Positions 1 through 64,000 of a stretch of DNA of 64,000 nucleotides are shown here, one piece after another. Positions within the stretch are counted from its first letter, which is position 1; each line of letters opens with the position of its first letter. A model generated the notes under the pieces. The model was not told where the DNA came from. It saw nothing but the letters and a program-made list of their open reading frames with translations, and ran no database searches. The position numbers were made by a program, and so were the translations under genes. Source of the DNA: Gracilinanus agilis (lineage: Eukaryota); the NCBI RefSeq assembly GCF_016433145.1, contig NC_058130.1:140685372-140749371 (forward strand), given 5' to 3'.

Positions 1-640
1 GGGGAGGGGAGGGGACGAGGGGGGTAAGGGTGGGACTAACGGGAGGGGAGGGGACGGAAGAGAAGGGGTGGGCCGGTGAAGAAGGACGCCGGAAGAACCA
101 GGAGCTGGGGGAGGGGGAGGGGCGGGGGGGAAAGGCTGCACTGTGAGCTGATTCTGCGCACGAGCACTAGGGGGCGGGGCTGGCTAGAGAGCGCACCAAG
201 AAAAGAGAGCGGGCTAGGCCCGAGGCAGCTGGGCTCGTCAGTGCGCACGAGGAGCGGTAGTCTTGGAACGAAGCATAGCTGCGGAAGAGTGGGGCTCAGG
301 ACTTCAGCTGAGCCCGCCAAGAAAGGAAGATGGGAAGATGAGACTACTGAAGAGACAGACGTATGCGTCTCGTGCGTGCGCTAGAGAAGGGGCGGGGACT
401 AGGCGGAACCGGAGGCGAAAGAGGTGGAGCTGGGGGAAAAAACAGGGGTGCGTGCCTGGAAGGAATAGGATTGGTCAACAAGGAGAGTGTCTGCGCGTGC
501 GCAGGCCGCCTTGCCAAAGGGAAGAGAATCCCGTTTCCCCAACCCCTTTCCCCACTCTGGCTCAGGGTGTTTTATTCCTCTAGGGGTCCAGAAGACTGTT
601 ACAGTTTTGGAGAAGCCCCCAGTACCCAGGAGGAGCCTGG
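1..640. promoter_or_regulatory. CpG-island promoter of the plus-strand HhH gene, probably bidirectional
   Basis: CpG-rich. Contains GC boxes (ggggcgggg near 172 and 389), ETS/GABP-like ccggaag (~90), NRF1-like tgcgcgtgcgca (~492-503), reverse CCAAT (attgg ~470) and G-tract runs at 1-130. Lies directly upstream of the ATG at 645. Confidence 0.75.
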
Positions 641-644
641 AGCC

Positions 645-2256
645 ATGGGCCCGGACGGGAGCCTCTATGACTGTGACAACCCCCAAATCTGGAAGGCCGT
701 GCTGGGCTGCTACAAAGAGGCGGTCAGAGCCAAAGAGGGCAAGTCCCGGAAACTTGTTGCTTTGGATGCATGGTGAGCCAGGCCAGCTGCCACCAGAGCC
801 TGCACCTCATTCTTAATTCCTCAAGGGTCCTGGACGAGGTGGGAGGCGAGGGGAGAGGGGAGGAGGCTGGGGCATTTCTCTGGCTCTGAAAGAAAAAGCA
901 GTCCTTACAAATACCCAAGTGTCAGTCCCTGCCCTCAACTCTACAATATTCTAGAAGAAACATACCCTGTGCTTAGCACAATGCTTGGTATATAGCAGGC
1001 TTTTGATAAATTGCCACTTTGGCTGACACATAGCTGGGAAAGGAAGTGATCCTGGGAGTCCCAGAGATATCAAGTGGAGCGGTGAGGCAATCCCAAAGCC
1101 AGATGTGGAAGGACATGTGGATAGGGTGTTAAGTGTGTTTGTTAGTAGTAGCAAGGCAAATGGCAGGATCCTGGGGAGGCCTTGTTATCCTGATAGGTAG
1201 CTGAAAATGATGTGCAGCGTAATCCGAGGCCAGCTATTCATAGTGGATCTGTTAAATTTGCTCTGGTCTACCAACCAGGACGACTCAGCCCCAGAATAGA
1301 GTTCCAAAGCAGAACAAATTTCCCCAAAGAGAGTGGGATAAGAGTGGAAAGAAGAGAAGGGGAGCAAGCTTCAGGGAAAGTGGCAAGATGTCCTCCCAAG
1401 CCTTGTCCCTGGTTTTTTGGTGGGCAGCTAGACGAGATTTGAGGTCTAGTTGCATCTCTTCACTTCTCCCTGAGAACCTGGACCCTAGGAGTATCCATTT
1501 CCAGTATTCAAAGAGGCCCTGGTATCTAGGGGATATATCCTAATCTCTAAAGGGTCCAAGACACAGGAACTCCATCTGTAATTGTATCTAGCATCTTGCT
1601 GTAAAGCAATTTAGTGCTGTACCCTGAGATCCAAGGGCTAGACTTTGGAAAGTGCTGTCCCAAAGGATCAGTGATCTTCACTGATCCCTCCCTATCACCA
1701 CTACACACACATATCCCTTGCTTTGTAAGTGGACACCTGTTTCAGGTATCAGGAGGAGCTGCCAGAATCTATAAGAGAGAGAAAAGAGAAATACTTAACT
1801 CGAGATGAATTGGTGAAGCTGATGGACTGGAAGCTGACGGTAAGCTCTTTCCCTATCTAATTGAGATTGCATCTGTGGAGATGGGCACAAATTCAGATAG
1901 AAAAGGTGCAGAAGAAACTCTTAGGGTCATTCAGACCAGTGACCTGATATGGTCCTCTCTACTATCCTATCATGGCCTTTCTCCAATTTCCAAAACTCTT
2001 CCTTCCCCCCAAATTAAATTACTTTATTTTATCTAGCTCTGCCTCTTTTGCTCCTTCTCTCTTTCCCTCTCTTCCCTCCCCCCTTTCCTTCTTCTCCCCT
2101 CCCCTCCCTCTCTATATATGAAAATGATGTGCAGCATAATCTGAGGCCAGCCAGTCATAATGGGTCAATTAATTTTGCACCAGCCTACCAACCAGGACAA
2201 CTCAACCCCAGAATGGAGTTCTAAAGCTGAATGAATTTCCCCAGAGAGTAGGGGTA

Positions 2257-2298
<42 letters not shown>

Positions 2299-4457
2299 AT
2301 ATTCTTGCATATACATAAATACACATGCACACAGTTACTTGTCTCCTTCAATGGAATTTAAACTCCTTGAATACTGTAACTGTTTCATTTGTACCCAAAG
2401 TGCCTAGGAAAGCAGGCACTTAATATTTGCTTGTTTATGTTCACTGATAGGTTACTGTATCAACTTTTCTCCCCTAGAAAGTTAGAAGTGGAATACTATT
2501 ATTTGAGAGATTTTAGAGATTATGGCCCAACCTCTTCATTTCATAGAGGCAGAAACAAACCCAGAAAGGGGAAATGGCATCCAAAGTTAGATTAGTGCCA
2601 GATTTACAATTGGTTTCAGGTCTTCCAATTTCCACCCTAGTGAAGTCAATCCCCAGGATTTGTTCCCAGCCAAGAGCTCCGTTTCATTCAATGACTTGGA
2701 GATTTTTAAAACCTATGTTTGTGTCCCTATGTTTCTAAGACTTTGGAGTTTGTTGTTTTTTTTTTAACCCTTACCTTCCATCTTAGAATCAATACTGAGT
2801 ATTGGTTCCAAGGCATAAGAGTGGCAAGTGCTAAGCATTTGGAGTTAAGTGACTTGCCCAGGGTCACAAAGGAAGTGTCCGTGGCCAGATTTGAACCTAG
2901 GACCTCCCACCTCTAGGGTTGGCTCTCCACCCATGGAGCTACTTAGCTGCCCCTGGATTTCTGTTTGAAGTTGGGAGTAAGGGTTGCATTCTGAAAACTG
3001 AGAAGTAGAGAGGTATTTCTACTGAAAAAAGACCTGGGTTTCTAAGGAAAAGAGATTAGAGCATGTAATTGGTCTAGAATGTGCAGTCAGAAGACCTGGT
3101 CATGAACCCCAATCTGACAGTTGTTAGCTGGGTGACGGCTCTTGGGATTTCTTGTTCTGACCATGTGCTCCTCCTTCTGCCCCTATCATCCCCCCACATA
3201 CTCAGAGGGGCCAGTTCAGACCACGACTGCAGAAGTTGGTGGCCACTAATCCGGAGGAGCTGGTAAAGCAGTGCACCGCTGCAGCGTTCTCTCTGCTGCC
3301 CAACGTGGAAGCTGCCATCACAGAGCTGAACCAGCTTAAGGCCGTGGGACCTGCCACTGCCTCTGGTGAGAGAGGAAGAGGAGGAGTAGAGCTGACAGTG
3401 TGATACTTTGTAACTTCCTCCTTAGAGCTGAGCCCTGGGGCTCCTGGGTTAAGGGAAGTCTTAGGGTGTCATATCTGACATCCTGGCATCTGCCTCTCCT
3501 GCTCAAGCCAGGAGGCTTCAGCTCAGTGGATACAAGTGGGACCTAAACTGACTGATACAGATCAAGCAAGGGCACTTGTCCCTCCTGCTCTCCCGGAGGC
3601 TGAGGAATGTCCCCTCCCTCTCCAGCTGCCTCAGGAGACCAGAATCTGACCATTTTAATCAGTTCAGTTTGGCATTTTTCTAACCTATGGCCAAATTCAA
3701 CCTGATGCTACTAAGAGACTTCTTCTGTTGGAGCAGATCCACCCAGCAGAAGAGATGACTTAGAGGTTATGGGGAACTTGCTTAAAATACTAGGGGATAT
3801 TCAGGCCCTAGGTTCCATGGAAGGGATGGATGAGCCTAGACTGGAGGATCCCTTGCTTTCTCTTTGCCCAATCATGATCATGTTTGTTCCCTTCCCTCAG
3901 CAATCCTGACAGCAGGTGCCCCAGAGACCACAGCATTCATGGCAGATGAGGCCATGGCTGCTGTCCCTGACCTCCCAGTGCTACAATACACTATCAAACA
4001 TTATATCCTCTACCTGGACAAGATCCGGGCCTGTGCTAGGAGACTGAACCAAGGTAAGAGCTAACTGCTGGAAGTATGTATATACCACAGTAGTCTAGGC
4101 CTGGGACAGGCTGACCAAATGTCTGCTCCCAGAAGGTTGGGGAATGACTAGGCCTAAATGTAGTGGGTTACGGAGTCTCAGGCCTTTGGGCTGGGAGACC
4201 CTCAGCAGAAATGCTTGGTTGGTTTAAATAGGCCCCAGAGTTGCACATTCATCTTCCCTTCTCCTTGGGCTTTTCTCATAGTTGATGCTTCATCAGAGTG
4301 GACTCCTCACCAAGTAGAGATGTGCCTCTGGACCTGGACTGTGGCCCAAAGACTGTGTCCCACAGTCCTGCCCCACATTTCTTGGAAAGCCCCCAAAGTC
4401 AGGGAAGGTGCTGAAGATGTCAGACCCTCCAAGAAACGAAAGGCTAGTATTCACTGA
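645..4457 (+). CDS. Uncharacterized 236-aa HhH-GPD DNA-glycosylase-fold-like protein (resembles my recollection of zebrafish zgc:112496)
   Basis: Exons 645-772, 1746-1839, 3206-3365, 3901-4053, 4282-4457. All introns are GT-AG, phases are consistent, total 711 nt, ATG in gccATGg Kozak context. Protein: MGPDGSLYDCDNPQIWKAVLGCYKEAVRAKEGKSRKLVALDAWYQEELPESIRERKEKYLTRDELVKLMDWKLTRGQFRPRLQKLVATNPEELVKQCTAAAFSLLPNVEAAITELNQLKAVGPATASAILTAGAPETTAFMADEAMAAVPDLPVLQYTIKHYILYLDKIRACARRLNQVDASSEWTPHQVEMCLWTWTVAQRLCPTVLPHISWKAPKVREGAEDVRPSKKRKASIH. The gene model is firm; the function is inferred. Confidence 0.88.
1203..2254 (+). repeat. Diverged ~135-bp direct repeat (1203-1337 and 2120-2254) flanking exon 2 of the HhH gene
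   Basis: The two copies align nearly gap-free, about 80-85% identical by eye. Confidence 0.85.
2260..2297. repeat. (TG)n microsatellite
   Basis: About 19 perfect units. Confidence 0.95.
2754..2953 (-). mobile_element. Marsupial tRNA/CORE SINE (SINE1_Mdo-like)
   Basis: Reverse complement of ggggcagct..gctcagtgg..gaggtcctaggttcaaat..gtgaccctgggcaagtcactt..aagggtt(A)n. Confidence 0.85.
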
Positions 4458-4569
4458 TCCTGGACATCTATATGCTGCACCCACAGAGAAATGCCTCAAG
4501 CCACAGTCTGAAGCCAGACATCCTCTACTCCTACCTATGGGGCTCAGGGCAGAGTTGCCACCGACACCC

Positions 4570-4575
4570 ATTAAA
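4570..4575 (+). terminator. Candidate poly(A) signal ATTAAA of the HhH gene
   Basis: ATTAAA about 113 nt after the stop codon. Confidence 0.4.
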
Positions 4576-4724
4576 GTGCCTACTGTCCTGACCTCATCTG
4601 ATTCTCTCCCAGGCAGGCATTGAGCTTGGAGTTAGAAAGATGGAATGTGTGGCTTCAATTCCACCACTAAATTCCCCTTGGGAAAGTCACTTGAATAATG
4701 TGTGGGGTTCTTTTTACACATACA

Positions 4725-4915
4725 CACACAATTTTCTATCTTAGAATTGGCACTAGGTATTGGCTTCAAGTCAGAAGGCTGATAAGGCAGTTGAAGTTAA
4801 GTGACTTGCTCGAGAGTTAAGTGACACAGCCAGGAAGAGTCTGAGGCCACATTTAAACCCAAGACCTCTCATCTCAAAGCCTGCCACTATCCACTGAACC
4901 ATTTAGCTGCCCCTG
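4725..4915 (-). mobile_element. Marsupial SINE between the convergent HhH and RHBDL1 3' ends
   Basis: Same consensus, more diverged. Confidence 0.75.
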
Positions 4916-6240: not shown

Positions 6241-9200
6241 CTAGGGGGGAGGCAGGACCTGTGCCCCCAGCAGGTCATAGGCGAAGATGTTCCAGAAGAT
6301 GGCAAAAAGGAGGAAGGTGGCATAGGAAAGCAGCACCACCCACCAGCCACACTGGTCCTGCAGGTTCTCTTCATAGCTTCGGAGGATGGTCAGACCCATG
6401 CTGATGCCCACGACGGCGCCCGCCAGATGGGCCATGAAGCTGGGCTGAGGGCCTGAGGCAGGCAGGGGCGGGGAGAAACGGAGCCAGACAGCTCGGCCCA
6501 CCTCTGAGCTCACTGTGTTGGGGGGGGGGAGCAAGATGTGAGGATGAAGGAACCCCTGGGGCAGCCCCCAGCCTGGCAGGGCCCGCTCACACCTCGGGAC
6601 ATGGTGGGTGCCCTCGGAGACTCCTAATGTGGTCATCTAGTGAGGAGTGATGCTCCAGGGGGCAGTGCCTGTCTGTGGCCAGACCTTCCTCCCTGCTAGT
6701 CATTCACTGTTCCTCCTTTATCTGCTGCAGTTGGGGGACAGAGGAACCCTATGGACCAGGCTCAGAACCTGTGAAGGGATGGGGGCTTCCTCAGGGCAGG
6801 GGAATGCTGTCCTGACCCCAGTTCAGCCCTCCCCACTCCCTTCCTCCTATCCACACCCCTGGGGCTGGCCAGTACTCACTGCACACCAGGGCCAGCACCA
6901 TCCTTAGCAGTTTGTATGGGCAGCGCATTCCGGCCCAGTTCTAAGAAGAAGGAGCATCTGGTCAGGGTTTGAACCCACTCTAATGACTCAGGCCATAGTG
7001 TCAGTGGGGATGCAGCTGGCCAGATTTTTCAAAACCCTCAGTGCCTCTTCCCCTCCAGCCCATGGCAGAACCTCTTCTTACCATAACAACATTGGCCAAG
7101 TGGGCAGAACAGAGGGCATAGACGCCGCCTGAGCCCCCTACCACAGGGGCCCGCATATCCGTGATGGAGACTGTCAGAGAGCCTGGGGGAGGAAGGGAAA
7201 GGAATGGGATGTCGAGCTGTCCCAGCAAGATGCCTCAGGAGAGAGTGGCTTCCCACTCCCCACCTCACCTGCCAGCACACCAGCCAAGTAGAGGAAGCCT
7301 ATCCGAAGCACCCCATGCACCATTTCCAGGGGCACGCCGATCATGAGCTGCAGGAGAGCATTGAAGCCCAGCTGTTCCAACCTGGACGGGGGAATAGGAC
7401 ACTGGTCAAAGCAACAGGACACTGACAGAGCATCTACCACAAAGTCCTGGAGCATAGGGAAGGCAGAACACCTCAATGATGTCACAGCATCACTACCGCC
7501 TTATTGAAAACCCACATCTGCCCAAAGCCCTGTACTCCAATGTGGGAGATCCCTTCCCTGCTCTCTAAAAGCAAAGGGAGGAAGGACTGCTCCAAAAGGG
7601 AATACTAGGTTCTAACTCCAGCTCTGCCAGGCACTAGTTTGAGGAATAGCCCTGGGGAGTCCCTTTTCCTCTTTTTCTGGGCCTCTGTCTCCAAGTGGCT
7701 GGGAAACAAGCTTCATCCCTACCTGGCCTGCTTTATGTGCTCTAGAAAAGGAGGTACGAACTTAAGAGACTATTTCCTCAGAGTCCCATAGCTCTTGGGG
7801 GAAACTTTGGACACGTTTCTTTCTGTCAAAAGCCCTTCCGTTTACCTGCATGAGATTGAAGCTGATCCCCTCTTACCCGACATGCATGAACATGTAAGTG
7901 AGAAATCGCCAGGCACGGGCACGGTGGCCAGGGTGGTACACCAGAGGACTCTTCATATACTCAGGGTGGTAGGTCTGCAACACCCACTTGTTCAGCCGAG
8001 CCCCATAACACAAGAACACAATGATCTGGGAAGGACACTTTATCTCAGTCTGAACCCCTGAGGCAGTAAACAAGGAAATCATTTTAGGGCTGAGAGTGGG
8101 GTGTCTGAGGCTACTACCTGTGTGAGTGTGACAGTAGCCATGAAGACAGGGGGTGGGCAGGTTCGGTGCTGGTAGAAGTACCATCGGCGGTCCATCTCAC
8201 AAGGAAGGATCTCATAAGCCACATAGCGCACAAAACGCTTGTAGAAACCAAGGCCTGGTTCATCTAGCAGCCCATCCCGGGGCAGGGCACGCTGCCCATT
8301 GGTGATGGCCCGCTTGAAGCTACTGGAGCGTTTGCTGCTGATCTACCAGGGAAAAACAGAAAAGGGCCCCTGATATCCAGCTTAGAAACCAGTGCCAGAA
8401 ACCTTGGGGACACAAGGACCACTTGAGAGAGGGAGTGAACTATTTTGGGGACCAAATTTCCAGGTAATTTGCCACCATTTTTGCTTTTCGTTCAAGATTA
8501 TGATTAATTGAATTATCTACCATGTACAGCACTTTTTTTTAAATCCATACCTTCTGCCTTAGAATCAATACTGTGTATCAGTTCTAACACAGAAGAGTGG
8601 GAGTTAAATGACTTGCCCAGGGTCACACAGCTGGGAAGTATCTTGAGGCCAAATTTGAACCCAGGACCTCCCATTTCTAGGCCTGGCTCTCAATCCACTG
8701 AGCTGCCCTCCCCCAACACTTTCCACCTTGGGCCCACATGCTTACTGTCAAAGACAATGAATAAACACTTGGACTTAAGCCCTCAAGGGAGATAAGGGAA
8801 ACCATCATCACCCAGCACTACTCCTAGACTCAGAGGAATGAAGGATTTAGATCTGGGAAGAATGATGGAGATTTTCTAGTCCAACCCATCCATCCTAAAG
8901 ATGAGGAGACCAGAGAAAATAAGTGACTGATCCCAACCACACAGTAAAAGTAGGATCTGAAATGATGGCCATTGACTCCAGAGCCAATATGCTTTCCAAA
9001 TCTTCTGCTGCCTGTTTCCTGTGCCAAAATTCCACCAATCATCTCTTTCAGACTGACCCTTGATGTGAATTATGCCCATTTTCCCCAGGTAGAGTGATAA
9101 CATGACTACAATAAGGTGGTCTCCCTAAATACCCCTCTACTAACACCCTAGAAGCAAGATCCAGGGGACCAATGGGAGCAGAGGTCACAGGCCTGAGGCC

Positions 9201-10910
9201 CCTGTCACTGACCAGGTCTACCAGCTCCTGGTAGCAGATCTGTCCTTGGTCATTGCTCTGGGCCAATGCCACCAGCATATCCAGTTTGGCAGGGTCCAGT
9301 GGCAGCTCATGGCTGTGCACCAGGCCAGTGAAGCTCTCGACACCAATGAAGCCAGTGTTGTCTGGGTCCAGCTGCTGTAGATAGAAAAGCCCAGGAAAGA
9401 GGAGGAAAGTTGAGGCCCAAAACAAGGAAGCTGGGGTCAAGACCAGCATTTTTCAGACCTACCCACCTTCATGTACACATCAAAGAAAGCTCTGGGATGG
9501 CAGGACTGAGATGAGATGGGATGGGGAGAAATCTATCTCAGACCCCGGACATCTTATTTTTCTGAATCTAGTAACCCATGAATAGTGAGAACTGATTTTC
9601 CATGCCAAGGGCAGAGGACCTCCTGACCCTCCTGGGGCCTGGCTTTCCTGGGCTTCTTCCTTTTCTCAAGTCTCAGGTGACCTCCACTTGTGTTCCCACT
9701 GGCAATTCAAAGGCCCTCATTCTCTGATCTTGCCCCAGGCATCGAAGGGAAGTGCCACAGGAACCTGTCCTATGCTGCCTTGTTTATTGTCTCTATTGGT
9801 CAGAGCAGGGAGAAGGAAGCCGCAGGTCCATGGGCCTCTTGTGCAGGCTAGTTGTTTTATGATTGCTAAGAAACAACTATGTTAAATTCCTGAATTGAAG
9901 GAGCCTGCAGCTCTACCCTTTCTTTTTAGGGAGGCGACTGTCTTCCCATTTCTGAATGTTCTCAAATTAGGAAGCTGCTAATACATTTGCTAGACAACTA
10001 TATCTGTTGCCCGACAATCCACTATTGTCAGGAACGCTTGCTGAGGTCTAACCTGTATCTTCATGCTATTTTAGGTCAGAAAACAGTTGGATACAACTTT
10101 CTGCCCCTATAAATCTTGTTTAGACTCACACTGATATTGAGTCCCCCACGTCTTCCATCCTAAGGCCAGACAATCCTTAGGGGGCAGAACAGCTAGACAG
10201 GTGATACAAGGTGGAAACAGAAAGCAGGGATGGAAGAGAAGGGCCCTTTGCTCCTGGCTCCCCAACCACACCATCACTGACTCTGGCTCTGACAGGCCAT
10301 CAGACCCGCAATCCAGCATTCCCTGGTCTGGGAGGGGAATTCCATCTTTCCCCTAATTCTCAGCCCCAGGGGTGTCCCCCGCCCCTGGCACGTCAGTGAG
10401 GGAGCTGAGCTCACAGGTCCGCGGGGGGCCTTGGAGGTCAGGGTGTCCTAGGGGTGGGGCAAGGGGGTGTCCTGTCGGAAAGGAGACAGGCACAGGGGTG
10501 TGGCAAACTGTGGCTCAGCCAGCCCGCCCCCCCCTACCCCGGCCGATCTGGTTCCCTGGGGAATCCCGCCCCAAGGAGGACTTGCACCCTGGTCTGGAGC
10601 GGACAGCGCACGGCTCCCGGAATCCCTGGGAAGGGAAGGAGAGCAGCCCTAACGGGGAGATGGCGAGACGCACCTTCAGGCGCCCGCCCAGCCGTTTGGT
10701 GCAATTCTCTGGTCCGCCAAGTTCTAGCCCCTGGCCGCAGCTGCAGGCAGTACATACGTCTTTCTGCATGCATGTGGAGGGTGCGGGGATGGGGGAGATG
10801 GGGAGTGCGATCTGTGCGGGAAGCCCAGCCCAGCCCAATCTGGCCCCGGCCAGCGCCCGCGCCCTCCGCACCTGCTCTTGGATGAGCTGCAGCAGGGAGC
10901 TCCTGTCCAT
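6241..10910 (-). CDS. RHBDL1: Rhomboid-related intramembrane serine protease 1, 373 aa
   Basis: Exons (5'->3') 10910-10872, 9374-9213, 8342-8118, 8025-7877, 7381-7269, 7182-7082, 6940-6880, 6512-6241; total 1122 nt, all GT-AG. Starts [17 protein letters not shown] and contains [10 protein letters not shown], catalytic GGSGG and AHLAG, ending [10 protein letters not shown]. Confidence 0.96.
8533..8710 (-). mobile_element. Marsupial SINE
   Basis: Same consensus. Confidence 0.85.
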
Positions 10911-11200
10911 AGAGCTGCCCGGGCGGGGGGGCGGCTGCTCCGCGGACCCGGCGCTGCAGCCCCGGCCCCGGCCCCAGGCCCAGCCCCAGCTCCGTTCTGC
11001 TCTTCGCTCCGGCCACCGCCACCGCCACCGCCGCACTCCCGCCCCGGCCCCCGCTAGTGCCGCCGCTGCCGCACACAGGGGCCAGCGCGTCACGGAGCCA
11101 CCACTCCCCTTCCCCCTCCCTCTCCTCTCCTGGACACACACACAGGCGCGCGCGCACACACGTACGTCCCACCCTTCCCTCCTCTCCCTTCACCGCTCAC
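10400..11200 (-). promoter_or_regulatory. CpG island over RHBDL1 exon 1 and promoter
   Basis: Very GC- and CpG-rich, with ccg/gcc repeats around the RHBDL1 ATG at 10910. Confidence 0.7.
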
Positions 11201-14200
11201 TCACAGAGCCACACAGCCTAGTCCTCTCCCGCTTTTCGACACACACAGATACACACAGACAGACTGACACACACACACCCCTCTATCCAAAGGTGCAAAC
11301 ACCCCAAGCTCCGCCCCTCTCCTGTCTTCCCTCCATATGCTCCTCCCTCAGACGCGACCCCCACTCCCCCACCCCCACACACACTGTGGAGAGATGGAGA
11401 CTCCCAAGTCCCTAGGATCTTACGCTGCAAAGGCCGTTACGGGACCAAGTTAGCCCTCTCCCTTCCCATCCAACCGAATTTACCGAGCACCTGCCATGTA
11501 AAGGGCATCGGGTTAAACCCAATAGGGGAAAACCGAGGGCCAGCCGCTGTTCCCTTCCCCAGGGGTGCCCCCATTAGAGCGGGCTTGGTCAGAGCCGTCT
11601 CTGGGGCTCCCATAGGGCTGGGGGCCCCATTTTCTGTCACAGCTCCATGGAGTTTCTCTCATTCATCACCCTGTTGTCACATGCCTACAACATCTCTCTT
11701 ATTGGTCTGAATAAAGTCTGTATTCCCCCACCCAACCCCAAATCTAGCTGGTACAAAGTCTGAGAGGAGGCTCTTAGTAAGACCATCTGGGGAATCAGCC
11801 CCAACAAGAGTGAGCGCAAGGGTGCCACGGTGCACACCGTCCCTACCTTCATGGAATTTCTGTTCTCCTGGAGAGGACACAACATGTCATCAGACAATCT
11901 GAGGAAGGAAAGAGCGTCAACAACTCAGTGGACCAGTGAAAACTATGGTAGAAATGACTTAAGATCTTTCTTAGAATGTAAAGAAAGGATAAAAAAAACA
12001 AAACAAAAAGCCTATAGCAACTATTCCCCAGATTGCACATTTGTGTATAGATAAATATCATCTGAGGAGCAACAGCCTGGAAAGATGGCCTGAAGGGAAC
12101 CCAGCTTTGAATGCTGTTTCTGACAGGACTCTGGGCTCACCTCTCACCTGTCAAATGGCCATAATGGCACCTAGTTATCTGTCTATTGTAACAAGGATCA
12201 AATGAGCTGATTATTTATGCAAAGGAGAGCACCCTCTTAAGGGCTATGTGTTAACTGGCATTCTATTTTATATAGAGATTTTTACCAGATTTACCGGAAA
12301 TTTTTATCTTTCAAAGATCTAAGTTCCGGGGCACAACCCATCTTCATTCCAACTAACATGGTAACCGCTTGGACAGTTACATATGTGTACCAAATTTCAT
12401 GTGCTTATAATCATAAAGTGTACTATAAAACCTCACATGAATAGACCCAACATTTATTCAGCATACATTTATTAAATATGCAATTTGTGCAAATCTTTTT
12501 GGGTGGAGGGAGGTGAAAAGGAGATGGCAACAGATCCCCTCACTGTCATCTGACATGTCCCTGAGGAAACAGTGCAGATGGGCATGCTCAGTGGGACAGG
12601 ATGGAGAGGGGCCTGGTGGCTGCCTAATTGCAGTACTGCCCTTTGTAACAAGCCAAGGAACAGACACATCCTTCTCCTCCACCCCGTCTACCTCCTGTAT
12701 TTATCACCAGAGCAACTGATTATTGAGCATCTGCTAGGTGCAGGGCTCGGTGCTTGGGAAGATTGGTTAGGGCCTACCTTGGAAAGCCTTATGATCAGTC
12801 TATTGGAGGAGATGGTAATCTATGCCTCCCTTCCCCAATCTATACTCTATTCATCCTTCAAAATAAAATTCCTACCAGAAAACCTTTCCCAACTATTCCT
12901 GCCCATAGTGGACTCCTTAATGACCTCCTGAAGCTCTTCTGATCAGTATGGTCCAGAATCAACATGCATTAGATCACTCTCCTCAAATAGGGACTGAGTC
13001 CCTCTGAGGGGTCTTACCTTTCTTCTGCCTCCTCCAGTGTCCTAAGCAAAGGTTTCTTGGAACATCTATGGCTAGTTTCTCATCCTGGGAATCTGCTCTG
13101 TGCAACAGGGTTCTTCTGCTTGGTCCCCCTTCCTCAGCCCAGAAAGCTTAAAAAAAAAAATCTACCCCTCTCCCCTTTCCCCAAAACACATACTCAAGCC
13201 ACATGCACATGTGTTCCATGTGAATCTCACAGATGGTGAAAAGGGGAAGGGAGGAGGGGGCTACTCCACAGGATACACGCCAGAAGTTTGCCAAAGAAAA
13301 CAACAGCAAATAGCGGATTTTTCAGTTTTGAAGCTGCAGCTGTCACCACCGAGGGGGACCTGCTCAGAAATAATGAGACACAAGCAATGACTGGTAAACC
13401 AAGTCTCCATGTCTGTCCCAGAATCCTGATTCTGACTCCAGGGGTGGTGGACAGTTTCATTTTTTAGGAGAAAGTGTGAAATTGGGTTCCTGGAACACAA
13501 TATAGCATTAATGAGGAAGCTGGACAAGCATCAGGTAGAAACTAAGCTGCCTGTGTAGCCCTACCTAACCTGGAAATGGGGTCTTTTTCTGATCAGTATG
13601 GGGGCAGCCTTCAAGGCATTCCTTTGCCCACCAAGCCCAGATTATGTCCCCTAGAGAGCACAGCTCTTGAATTCCTACACCAGGAAGAGGACCGGGATGG
13701 GAGAGGCCACCCTTGTCTCTTGGGGAGGGGGGGCAGGGCACAGTGGCCAGAAATAGACTTGTCCTTTGAGGATCCAGTCCCAAACTCACATGCTAACCCA
13801 CCAGAATCTGTGCAACTGAGAGGATACCAGGGGAGAGAAATCTGGCCCCAGTGGACTTGGCCTTATGACTGTTGTGACAGAGGCTGTTGGGTTACCATAG
13901 CAACCCCCTCAGAGGGCCATTCGGAAATCCATAACCTCCTGTCGGGGAGCTGAAAAGGAGCAATTACTCCTGGCAGTTAATGCCCCTAGAGGATGCTGGA
14001 AGGTTAGAAATAGCAAGCTGGTCTGTTCAGAAATAGGCCTAAGGAACGAGGTTGCTCAGAGCTCAGAGCAGGAGCATTAAGCTGAGTGGTTTTTCTCCCC
14101 AAACCTCCCTGGTAGGACACAAGGGGGTGGGGGGTGAGGGGGAAACAGCAGAGAGGCTGAAACAGTTTGCCAGATCTGGGCCACACTGAGAGATGTTCCT

Positions 14201-14814: not shown

Positions 14815-17488
14815 GAAAAGTGTTTATCCCATCATAAAATCATATGGCTTTGGACAATGAACATGATACTCAAACACAAAAAAGCAGGTGAAAAGTGGCA
14901 TTTCTTGGGGTTCCAACCCAGACTTTTCCTCCTGGGCTAGACAGGAACAGCCTTGTCAGTAGGATGCTGGTCCAAATGATGTTAGAGCAGCATGGAGAGC
15001 AGGTCAGTAATAAAAGGAGATATCCTGGGATGAGGATCTTGGCTAGAATCATCAAAGCCATGTTGAAGCTAAGAGAATCCAGTTACCCAGACTCTACCAG
15101 TGAAGGCTAGTGACCAGCAGGGTCTCCTGACAGCAAGTATCAATTTTTCCCACTCCCAGGAAAAGCCCGTTATAACTATGAAAACACCAATTCTTCTCAT
15201 ATATTATTCTAGACTGGGACACTGGTTCTCAAGAGGAATCTGTTCCCAAACTGGGAATCAGGACACAGGGAACCAGAAGTCCACTCCCCACTCCTCAAAC
15301 CCATGAGGTAGGGCCTTTTCCTGTTCCCTTCAACACTGAAAGCCACATCCCAAAGAAAAAATGGACACTCAACCCAAGTTGGTTCTCTTCTTGGACACAA
15401 TGCAGCTTTGGTCCTGTATTTTCTATTGTTGAATTAATCCCTACCAAAATGGCCCTCAGCCTCAAGGACAAATGTTGAGGGGCTATTTATTTAGAAGATG
15501 AAGATGGCCAAAATTTCTCTCATCCAGCCCTCTGACCACCAAGTCCTGCCTTATAAGCCCCACAGGCTCCCTCAATGACATTACAAAGCAAAGCTACAAA
15601 GGGCCAAACCCAGGACAAAGATCCTAGCTGGTAGATGGTGGATCAATACCAATAACTCTCTTCTGGCTATATCCTTGTGCCTCTGCTTATAATCTAGGGG
15701 CTGGAGAAGTTTGAGAGATTGTTGTAAGGAAATGCTGTATCCCTTTTCTTCAGCTCATAAAGGAACATCACAGCTCTGTCGGCCTCATATGGCAAATATC
15801 TATTATAAATACATGAAGCCTCTCCTTTAAAGTAAACTAAACAATTAACACGGACCCTTGATGTCAGTGTACCAAGCATACACCACTGCTCCAGATATAT
15901 AGAACCAGGCTATGGTTCTAAAATAGATCCTATTTTGAAAATAGATTACTGCATAAAAAGGTAGTTTACATAACACTATTGCAATAGCACAACGTAAACT
16001 GCCCTACCCTGAGTATACTTGAAAGGTCCAAGTGCTTGCTCCTTGCTTAATTGGTTGCCTTTCTAACCCTGCCTCCGACTCACGGTCAGATGAGTGCCAG
16101 CAGGGAAGGGATGGGCAACAGACACAGATGCGATGGGGCAATCATTCCTAGTGGAGGATGTCAAGAAATATGTATTTATAAAAAAAGATAGAGGGAGAGA
16201 AAATTGAAACAGGGAGAGAAGAGAGAGGCATGTCAAGAGGATTCCAGCCCACGCTAAGATTGAGGATGAAGAGACATGTTTTAGGCTGACACAAAAAGAC
16301 ATTTTTCAAAGCATGAGGTCTTAGTCATAGAAAAGATAGAATTTCCAGTTTAAATGGGAAACAAAATGACTTTTTTTTTTCATGCCCTAACGTGTATGCA
16401 TACTGAAGTGGTGAACACGGGATGATTATTTCATTAGTCCAAAATCTGGGTCACTCATGGTGGAAAAATCCTTAATGGCCTCCTTTGCTCCAGGGGCTAT
16501 CTCCTGATTCTGTCCTAATTCCCAGAGCCATGAGCTTCAGCCTGCTTTTGAGCTTAGGAAACCTTAGAGCCCCAAGCCTGATGAGGAAGGGAAGGAGAAG
16601 ATGACCCAGAGATGGAGATTGCCTAAGGAGAATTCCAGTTTGAATCCATAAGCCTCCTAGCCTCCCAACTAAGGATCTTTTGGAATTCAGTTCTATAATG
16701 CCAGCACGGCACAAACTCTCAGAACACAGCAAAGTATGTGACACTTTATACCCAAAGGCATGAGGCTGAGAGAAGGAAGCTGGAGATTTGGGAACATCTA
16801 AGCGGGCCCGGGAAAGAGAAGAGATGTGGCCCAGAACATTGCTAGAGATTCCAATTTGGGAATCAGCATGTCAGATGAGTAAGTGTGAACTGGGGTACAG
16901 TTTATGCCTAATGGAAGGAGACCGAACGGCTGAGAACCCCAAAGACTGTATTTCTACAGTCTCCCTGGGTGCCAAATCTCCCCATTGTAATCCTAGGTTA
17001 AAGGTTGGGATCAGGAGGAAATATCTTCCGGTTGACCACTGTGGGGTTCTGCTGGGGTTTTGCTGGTTCCCCTCCCCTCAGGTATGCCACCCTAAAATCA
17101 AGCAGGGAAGGCAGAGAGGTCCCACCAATGTCTGAAGCCAGTCCCAAGCCTCCCTTCCAGACAGATAGAGGTAGGTGCCTTCTTTAGGAGACTGAGCCTG
17201 AAAACTTTAAAAATTCTAAACAAGCTATGATCTTGGAGGTCCCTCTGCTTCCTCAGCCCCTCCGAAGGGCCCTGAGATTGGGAACACAGAGTTTAGAGGA
17301 CTTAGTGAGATGGGAAGAGTGCATCGTGAAATGCCAGTTGAGGCTATAATATAATGGGCTCTGAGGCAGAGGCAGGGAGAAATCATCAGGGAGTGCTCCT
17401 CCAGTGCGTGGGTAACCCTGATCTGTCCTGGCAGGATGAAGAGAAGCCAACTGCAGCATCAGTGTCTGGTGGGACCCAGACCTTCCCC

Positions 17489-32963
<15,475 letters not shown>

Positions 32964-63219: not shown

Positions 63220-64000
63220 CAATGGACGAGCTAACATAATAACAATGACCATTCTACCCAAATTAATTCACCTATTTAGTGACATACCTATCAAACTACC
63301 AAAAAACTTTTTTACTGAATTAGAAAAAACTATAACAAAGTTCATTTGGAATAACAAAAGATCAAGAATATCAAGGGAAATAATGAAAAAAAAAAATGTG
63401 AAGGAAGGTAGCCTAGCAGTGCCAGATATTAAACTATACTCTAAAGCAGCGGTCATTAAAACGATATGGTACTGGCTAAGAGACAGAAGGGAGGATCAGT
63501 GGAATAGACTTGGGGTAAATGACCCCAGCAAGACAGTATATAATAAACCCAAAGAGCCCAACTTTGGGGACAAAAATCCACTATTTGACAAAAACTGTTG
63601 GGAAATTTGGAAAACAATATGGGAGAGACTAGGTTTAGATCAACATCTCACACCCTACACCAAGATAAATTCAGAATGGGTGAATGACTTGAATATAAAG
63701 AGGGAAACTATAAATCAGGGGCCAGCAACTATGGCTCTCGAGCCATATCTGGCTCCACCTCTGGACCAGCCAGTCAGGGCAGAGCCCCAGGATGTGCCCC
63801 AGGGGGCCCTTCAGCCCCCGCCCCAAATTCCAGCGCCTTCTGCCTCCATCCTCCTCCTTCCTCAGGCGTTTATGGCTCTCACGGCCAAAAAGGTTGCCAA
63901 CTGTTGCTATAAATAAGTTAAGTGAACACAGAATAGTATACCTGTCAGATCTCTGGGAAAGGAAAGATTTTAAAACCAAGTAAGAGTTAGAGAAAATTAC
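63220..64000 (+). mobile_element. 5'-truncated marsupial L1, ORF2 C-terminal region; continues off the window
   Basis: Translation MTILPKLIHLFSDIPIKLPKNFFTELEKTITKFIWNNKRSRI..LAVPDIKLYSKAAVIKTIWYW..FDKNCWEIW..LTPYTKINSEW is typical of L1 ORF2. Confidence 0.95.
63716..63906. mobile_element. Non-autonomous hAT MITE, family B, nested in L1 ORF2
   Basis: TIRs caggggccagcaac and gttgccaactgttg; perfect 8-bp TSD ctataaat; L1 ORF2 resumes on the other side. Confidence 0.9.

Follow-up and report, generated by a model that had tools for sequence, protein, structure and literature searches.

In Gracilinanus agilis, the interval between STUB1 and RHBDL1 holds a five-exon gene on the plus strand, and this report concerns that gene and the 64,000-nucleotide (nt) stretch of DNA in which it lies (contig NC_058130.1 of assembly GCF_016433145.1, positions 140,685,372 to 140,749,371 of the forward strand; hereafter the window). 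The gene occupies window positions 645-4457 (Table 1), corresponds to LOC123230937, and is the marsupial orthologue of a eukaryote-wide protein family, zgc:112496/Amun, with a predicted helix-hairpin-helix (HhH) DNA glycosylase fold. Joined together, its five exons amount to 711 nt, that is, 236 codons plus TGA in one uninterrupted open reading frame (ORF); all four introns begin with GT and end with AG, and their acceptors are pyrimidine-rich. An initial annotation of this DNA had described a complete five-exon gene of 236 amino acids (aa) with canonical splice sites and a start codon in a strong Kozak context, and both the structure and the start context proved to be exactly as described.

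Table 1. Features at the LOC123230937 locus, in window coordinates.
Feature	Position	Strand	Remarks
Coding exon 1	645-772	+	128 nt; conserved start codon, context GCCATGG
Coding exon 2	1746-1839	+	94 nt; first part of the WKLxRGxFRPRL motif at 1828-1839
Coding exon 3	3206-3365	+	160 nt; rest of the WKL..FRPRL motif at 3206-3229; helix-hairpin-helix from 3308
Coding exon 4	3901-4053	+	153 nt; end of the HhH (to 3908), Gly/Pro loop, Asp143-Glu144 (GAT GAG, 3945-3950)
Coding exon 5	4282-4457	+	176 nt including TGA; disordered tail with KKRK at 4431-4442, a candidate nuclear localisation signal
Upstream exon of the RefSeq models	338-424	+	ATG at 338; alternative donors after 361 or 424, acceptor before 585
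ATTAAA, candidate polyadenylation signal	4570-4575	+	113 nt past the stop codon; putative function
CpG island, presumed promoter and 5′ leader	1-644		assigned by composition; putative promoter function
RHBDL1 (rhomboid), convergent neighbour	6241-10910	-	called gene with PF01694 (locus 15904-20573)

The 236-aa product is identical to residues 50-285 of the G. agilis RefSeq protein XP_044513064 (P0151) and to residues 29-264 of a second isoform, XP_044513065 (P0152); the gene is already in RefSeq as the protein-coding LOC123230937 and is not a new gene. The RefSeq models start further upstream, with N-terminal peptides that map to 338-424, 338-361 and 585-659, and the upstream exon lengthens their products by 28 or 49 residues. 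The Monodelphis, koala, reindeer and horse proteins all lack this extension, which no other species has, and for this reason the conserved ATG at 645 is more likely to be the start of translation. The RefSeq start at 338 was rejected as the coding start on the same ground, the extension being missing in every other orthologue, and the upstream exon is probably a spliced 5′ leader that has been read as coding.

Relatives of the protein are numerous and widely spread. Exon 3 alone (53 aa), searched against 1.84 billion protein representatives, had 176 relatives at an expectation value (E) of 0.001 or less, many of them about 240 aa long and aligning end to end with the spliced product. BLASTP of the whole 236-aa product, a check suggested in the initial annotation, recovered full-length orthologues far beyond chance, including a fish protein (P0003) with 54% identity over residues 7-232 (E = 1.6e-86) and a reindeer protein (P0048) with 52% identity over residues 1-232. 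Overall, the product is 93% identical to its Monodelphis orthologue, 79-93% identical to eight other marsupial proteins of equal length, 54-57% identical to eutherian proteins and 50-57% identical to fish proteins, and its nearest cluster contains RefSeq proteins of Sarcophilus, Phascolarctos, Monodelphis and G. agilis itself. When the Monodelphis orthologue served as the query, it matched many proteins named zgc:112496 (E = 1e-66 to 1e-77), with full-length orthologues in eight marsupials (79-89% identity), platypus, echidna, turtles, lizards, snakes, tuatara, crocodilians, amphibians, sharks, rays, many bony fishes (where the name zgc:112496 is used) and eutherians. Outside the vertebrates, members were found in oyster, crinoid, annelid, coral, sea urchin, tick and choanoflagellate, and further members in the fungi Mortierella and Calcarisporiella and in a plant. 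The residues that are invariant in a 96-member family alignment (L48, G122, A124, T125, A126, F140 and E144), together with the motif WKLxRGxFRPRL, are all present in the opossum protein. On this full-length similarity the protein is a member of the zgc:112496/Amun family, and the likeness to an uncharacterized fish and fungal family that the initial annotation had noted is borne out, fungal members included.

Several names in public databases tie this family to Drosophila Amun. Tick homologues are named "protein amun" by NCBI, one of them (P0104) with 47% identity over 211 residues (E = 4e-59), and a snake orthologue is named CG2446 in UniProt, CG2446 being Amun; the link rests on these names of tick and snake proteins. 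The literature found on the vertebrate genes is sparse. The one mention of zgc:112496 that we found places it in a table of repair-gene expression in zebrafish (PMC4140902), STUB1-DT was found only in one list of differentially expressed genes, and a search for LINC02867 returned nothing. The description of the gene as uncharacterized and unstudied is correct in part, with the qualification that it already stands in RefSeq and that its arthropod relatives carry the name of Drosophila Amun.

An AlphaFold (AF2) model built from an alignment of 96 diverse family sequences had a predicted local distance difference test score (pLDDT) of 91.9 and a predicted template modelling score (pTM) of 0.86; it consists of eleven helices and, beyond about residue 205, a tail that is disordered (pLDDT 60-68). 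A structure search independent of Foldseek (VIA-align), covering 48,161 chains, placed Thermotoga Tm1821 Ogg (3n0u) first at Z 10.5; the next 20 chains all had the HhH-GPD fold (Z 5.3-7.3; EndoIII, MutY, OGG1, MagIII, Mag1, NTHL1, AlkA, AGOG, DUF2419 and a phage 5-PmdU transferase are in this set), and unrelated folds came only at Z 4.7 or less. By VIA-align, Methanocaldococcus jannaschii MjOgg (3knt) scored Z 10.4 and Sulfolobus solfataricus SsOgg (3fhg) Z 9.7. Foldseek also ranked archaeal Ogg enzymes first, and the fold assignment rests on VIA-align because Foldseek alone gave only E 0.04-0.06. At the level of Pfam, the OGG-like family PF21790 matched below threshold (E = 0.0048, 17 bits against a cut-off of 27, residues 65-194 against positions 61-200 of a 201-position profile), while the HHH family scored 16.2 bits in the opossum protein (cut-off 24), 24.1 in the horse orthologue and 26.8 in the Danio orthologue; single exons gave only a weak HHH match, in exon 3. 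The assignment of a two-lobed, all-helical HhH-GPD glycosylase fold, with Ogg2 as the nearest subfamily, is sound on the strength of the model, and the HhH-glycosylase likeness noted at the outset agrees with a search in which the top 21 of 48,161 chains all have this fold (Z 10.5-5.3).

In the family alignment, G122, A124, T125, A126, F140 and E144 are the same in 96 of 96 sequences and the hairpin G-P-A-T-A is invariant, P135 is found in 92 of the 96, and the positions of W71-K-L-x-R-G-x-F-R-P-R-L82 are kept in 89-95 of them. The tail is conserved as K-K/R-x-K/R (K229 in 87/96, K/R230 in 91/96, K/R232 in 89/96), and the KKRK of the opossum protein fits a classical nuclear signal, for which it is a candidate by its sequence. 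In enzymes of the Ogg/EndoIII type, the Schiff-base lysine sits in the HhH motif GxG-x-K-x-A. We take Ala124 to be the equivalent position by motif alignment; it is alanine in 96/96 sequences, which excludes a lyase mechanism. Beyond the hairpin come a G133-A-P135 loop and then D143, which lies 19 residues past A124 and, in the model, in the first turn of the helix 143-147. In HhH-GPD glycosylases the catalytic Asp comes after such a loop, about 18-20 residues beyond the HhH lysine (K249/D268 in hOGG1, K120/D138 in EndoIII), and by its spacing D143 is a candidate for it. Monofunctional glycosylases such as MutY and AlkA also have no such lysine, and the modelled protein has the outline of a candidate monofunctional HhH-GPD enzyme.

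These features suggest a possible mode of action. The protein would enter the nucleus and grip the DNA backbone through the invariant hairpin L-K-G/A-V-G-P-A-T-A-S-A, and a flipped-out or damaged nucleotide would be presented to a cleft lined by the near-invariant WKLxRGxFRPRL and F-M-x-D-E motifs; with an invariant alanine in place of the lysine, no chemistry of the Ogg lyase type would follow. A monofunctional glycosylase using Asp143/Glu144 is proposed tentatively, at rather less than even odds. Almost as probable is a non-enzymatic nuclear regulator or reader of lesions, abasic sites or modified bases, with the fold serving as a DNA-binding module only, by analogy with Drosophila Amun or with Mag2, the inactive Schizosaccharomyces pombe homologue. 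A preprint that cites Shalaby et al. (2009) describes Amun as a nuclear protein with a glycosylase domain that regulates transcription in the Notch pathway; Mag2, a glycosylase homologue that does not cleave, is among the structural matches of the opossum protein (Z 7.2); and the loss of the lyase lysine to an invariant A124 would suit such a role. Yet that lysine is missing from the monofunctional MutY and AlkA as well, and an Asp-Glu pair that stays almost invariant from fungi to mammals, at the expected catalytic position, is hard to explain for a pure binder. Activity on another substrate appears improbable: a nucleotide or nucleoside hydrolase or an enzyme of hypermodified bases, like DUF2419/QNG1 (queuine salvage) or the phage 5-PmdU transferases, would account for the presence among the structural matches of DUF2419 (Z 5.8-5.9) and a phage 5-PmdU glycinyltransferase (Z 5.3), for a feature search with exon 3 that touched a 5-hmdU kinase helical domain (score 0.71), and for the OGG-like domains fused to restriction-type nucleases among the structural neighbours. 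These matches, however, are weaker than those to Ogg2 (Z 10.4-10.5), and both the hairpin of the HhH, which is invariant, and the nuclear signal speak for DNA as the substrate.

The position of the gene is the same across mammals. STUB1 (with TPR, CHIP_TPR_N and U-box domains) lies on the minus strand to the left of the window in the G. agilis assembly GCA_016433145.1, as expected from the human order, and the order STUB1(-)/gene(+)/RHBDL1(-) is found in G. agilis, Monodelphis, Petaurus, Macrotis, horse, Hipposideros, Pteropus, cow and macaque. Splice mapping of the horse, cow, Hipposideros and Pteropus proteins onto their own loci gave exons of 128/94/160/153/164 nt in all four, against 128/94/160/153/176 nt in the opossum. 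With the horse protein as query, proteins of 230-232 aa with 75-84% identity were found in hippopotamus, warthog, pig, cattle, musk deer, reindeer, Hipposideros, Rhinolophus, Pteropus, manatee, dugong, beaver and shrew, and longer predictions in whales. A bat contig from Logan (SRR22936477), whose protein clusters with that of Rhinolophus sinicus, carries the whole 232-codon ORF without introns and is thus transcript-like. Pairwise ratios of nonsynonymous to synonymous substitution rates (dN/dS) among horse, cow and three bats were 0.18-0.41; between eutherians and the opossum they were 0.11-0.29, with synonymous divergence (dS) saturated.

The initial annotation had proposed loss of the gene in the human lineage or in eutherians generally, and the two halves of this proposal fared differently. 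That the gene was kept by marsupials and lower vertebrates and lost from eutherians as a whole deserves practically no credence. Searches of protein sets with Monodelphis, horse and langur queries did return no human, mouse, rat, carnivore, lagomorph or bird protein, which, for the mammals among these, is what such a loss would predict; nevertheless, it is refuted by horse, cow and bats, whose copies in this slot are intact, with five exons and dN/dS of 0.18-0.41, and the full-length proteins of hippopotamus, warthog, pig, manatee, beaver, shrew and whales and the spliced, transcript-like bat contig speak against it as well. Loss in the human lineage, on the other hand, is likely in view of the decay seen in macaque.

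In rhesus macaque, the copy between STUB1 and RHBDL1 aligns with the horse exons at about 73-82% nucleotide identity and is broken in every exon. The start codon has become ATA and the exon 2 donor GC. Exon 1 has two deletions, of 2 and 1 nt, and exon 2 likewise two, of 1 and 4 nt; exon 3 has gained 5 nt at its HhH-coding end, and exons 4 and 5 have single deletions of 2 nt and 1 nt, respectively, for net changes of -3, -5, +5, -2 and -1 nt in exons 1-5. The only primate entries, from Pygathrix, Macaca and Pongo, are aberrant predictions in which the HhH core is destroyed. In place of the GVGPATASA of intact proteins, the predictions have GVGPPQ (orangutan) and GVDPPQ (macaque), and both readings appear to fit a single insertion older than the split between Old World monkeys and apes; if the insertion does predate that split, the human copy should carry it too, by descent. 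The gene is thus likely to be a unitary pseudogene in the human lineage, as judged from macaque and orangutan.

Public names already connect the opossum gene with the human long non-coding RNA (lncRNA) STUB1-DT. NCBI names the Monodelphis orthologue "uncharacterized protein STUB1-DT", UniProt names it "Long intergenic non-protein coding RNA 2867", and the hedgehog orthologue is also named "STUB1-DT"; the link is in public annotation by name, and the initial placement of the gene at the position of this lncRNA agrees with the slot in which it lies. The gene is ancestral. It persists in marsupials and monotremes, in reptiles, amphibians and fishes, and in many eutherian orders, and it has decayed in catarrhine primates, where its remnant would be what is annotated as STUB1-DT; it has probably decayed in elephants too. 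The elephant predictions (P0318 and P0112, from Loxodonta and Elephas) are without RGRFRPRL, have the HhH altered to G-A-A-T-A and carry His at D143. Manatee and dugong look intact, and the elephant decay may be independent within Afrotheria. Crocodilians, turtles, beaver and many ungulates are among the matches; the absence of birds, carnivores, lagomorphs, mouse and rat from them may mean that more lineages lost the gene, or that the assemblies have gaps.

A number of observations weigh against this account of the gene, both in its fold and function and in its history. Foldseek matches to solved glycosylases were weak (E = 0.06, TM-scores 0.41-0.46), sequence searches of the PDB with the single protein (phmmer) and with a 96-sequence profile gave nothing significant and no Ogg at E ≤ 10, and Pfam PF00730 (HhH-GPD) had no match at E ≤ 1 in the opossum protein or four orthologues. 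D143 is found in 92/96 sequences, with Glu in 3 and His in 1, and its reading as the catalytic Asp draws on spacing and helix position in the model, not on a residue-level superposition. The role reported for Amun, so far as the preprint describes it, is regulatory (Notch-dependent cell fate) and not one in repair. The dN/dS values cover eutherian pairs and eutherian-opossum comparisons, and the human loss is read from macaque and orangutan sequence. Finally, no read of four RNA runs was placed on 2960-4690, and the word shares of 6-8% that these runs have with the stretch therefore probably stem from repeats in its first half.

The lack of placed reads, and the annotation of the slot as an lncRNA in human (going by gene names), are what would be expected if the opossum ORF were a chance or decaying frame and the locus a non-coding divergent transcript as in human. 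We nonetheless regard this as very improbable, given 236 codons with neither stop nor frameshift, the retention of every family-invariant residue, and identities of 79-93% to eight marsupial proteins of equal length and of 54-57% to eutherian proteins; the macaque copy displays what true decay of this gene looks like, and the opossum copy is unlike it. Taken together, the identity, fold and evolutionary history of the gene at 645-4457 as set out here have a probability of roughly 0.8. The more specific proposal, that the family is an ancient eukaryotic glycosylase or reads modified bases or abasic sites, with an Ogg2-like fold, an invariant Asp-Glu pair and no lyase lysine, and that catarrhines including humans lost this activity, is rather unlikely.

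Upstream of the gene, positions 1-600 of the window have a GC content of 0.58-0.64 and an observed/expected CpG ratio of 0.75-0.80, against 0.16 in the introns; of the CpG promoter that had been credited to the gene, the island is thus plain to see, and the promoter activity is putative. The suggested co-regulation with STUB1 fared less well in this species. The coding start of G. agilis STUB1 lies at about -4970, some 5 kb left of the window and about 5.3 kb from the RefSeq start of the gene, whereas the gap between the two genes is 0.5-0.9 kb in Monodelphis, Petaurus and Macrotis and 0.33-0.5 kb in horse, Hipposideros, Pteropus and cow. A tight bidirectional promoter was rejected for G. agilis on account of the 5.3-kb gap, and a common promoter is doubtful there; a bidirectional promoter common to both genes is plausible in the species with short gaps (0.3-0.9 kb). 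The wide gap in G. agilis could be an insertion or could reflect a first exon missing from the STUB1 model in this species. In the bat contig, a spliced STUB1 ORF (2-736, minus strand) and the glycosylase-like ORF (1032-1730, plus strand) stand head to head with 296 nt between them, an arrangement that suggests a single promoter whose divergent transcripts overlap or abut.

The introns and flanks of the gene contain repeats. A dispersed pair at 1202-1331 and 2119-2248 has 84% identity over 130 nt, and pieces resembling short interspersed elements at 2776-2955 and 4734-4915 are 72-80% identical; the copies are spread over introns 1 and 2 and the flank downstream of the gene, and a (GT)n microsatellite lies in intron 2 (2259-2297). 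On the other side, RHBDL1 is convergent with the gene, as first described, and an ORF within it (9048-9449) carries a pair of EF-hands. The region 10372-11415, which adjoins the 5′ end of RHBDL1, is very GC-rich with long overlapping ORFs on both strands and is most likely the RHBDL1 CpG island, not extra genes. Far from the locus, a 223-aa ORF on the plus strand (63245-63916) resembles a reverse-transcriptase fragment of a long interspersed element and had no Pfam match at E ≤ 0.001.

As a gene discovery, the locus adds nothing: the gene is in RefSeq, and public names tie it to human STUB1-DT. Its interest lies in a conserved protein of predicted glycosylase fold, found from fungi to mammals and without a known biochemical activity. 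Many placentals keep its gene intact, whereas Old World monkeys and apes have a broken copy, and the mouse protein sets that were searched do not contain the protein. This is a lineage-specific loss and not a marsupial speciality, and the pattern of loss would explain why the standard mammalian models of base-excision repair never met the gene. Judging from macaque and orangutan, it would also trace the human lncRNA STUB1-DT back to a coding gene that decayed. If the protein is indeed a glycosylase or reader, then a base-excision or DNA-surveillance activity survives in marsupials, ungulates, bats, sirenians and most other vertebrates; catarrhines, humans included, lost it, and murid rodents, carnivores, elephants and birds may have done so too. 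The horse, cow, bat, opossum and zebrafish proteins offer a direct route to activity tests.

Among known systems, the closest are the orthologues themselves. Zebrafish zgc:112496 (ENSDARG00000004274) and its vertebrate orthologues belong to the same family, of which LOC123230937 is the same gene, and the Monodelphis protein called STUB1-DT (XP_007499289) is an orthologue with 93% identity in the same STUB1-RHBDL1 slot. Human STUB1-DT (LINC02867) agrees with the opossum gene in where it lies and which way it points with respect to STUB1 and RHBDL1; unlike that gene, it is annotated as non-coding. The tick proteins named after Amun (301-426 aa) and the insect-like structural matches (263-659 aa) are mostly longer than the opossum protein, with extra regions. 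PF21790, a putative OGG-like family of bacteria and archaea, gave the only domain-length Pfam match, at 17 bits, a score that does not establish membership; structural neighbours that bear this domain have TM-scores of 0.65/0.85 to a close relative of the opossum protein. Among the neighbours of a close relative there are also stand-alone OGG-like proteins of about 196 aa in Gemmatimonadota (TM-scores 0.80/0.94), and bacterial OGG-like domains of the same fold are fused to restriction-type modules (PLD/NgoFVII, NucS_C, NmeDI_C and McrB AAA); these occurrences hint at a fold widely used to sense modified DNA bases. The Ogg2 8-oxoguanine DNA glycosylase/AP (apurinic/apyrimidinic) lyases (3n0u, 3knt and 3fhg) align over 158-168 residues, that is, over the whole domain, and resemble the opossum protein in size (about 205 aa) and in having an HhH ahead of a Gly/Pro loop and an acidic residue; they are only 12-15% identical to it, and sequence searches gave no match. 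Membership in Ogg2 was rejected, the lyase lysine being absent: unlike Ogg2, the zgc:112496/Amun family has its own WKLxRGxFRPRL motif and basic tail, and Ala124 in place of the catalytic lysine.

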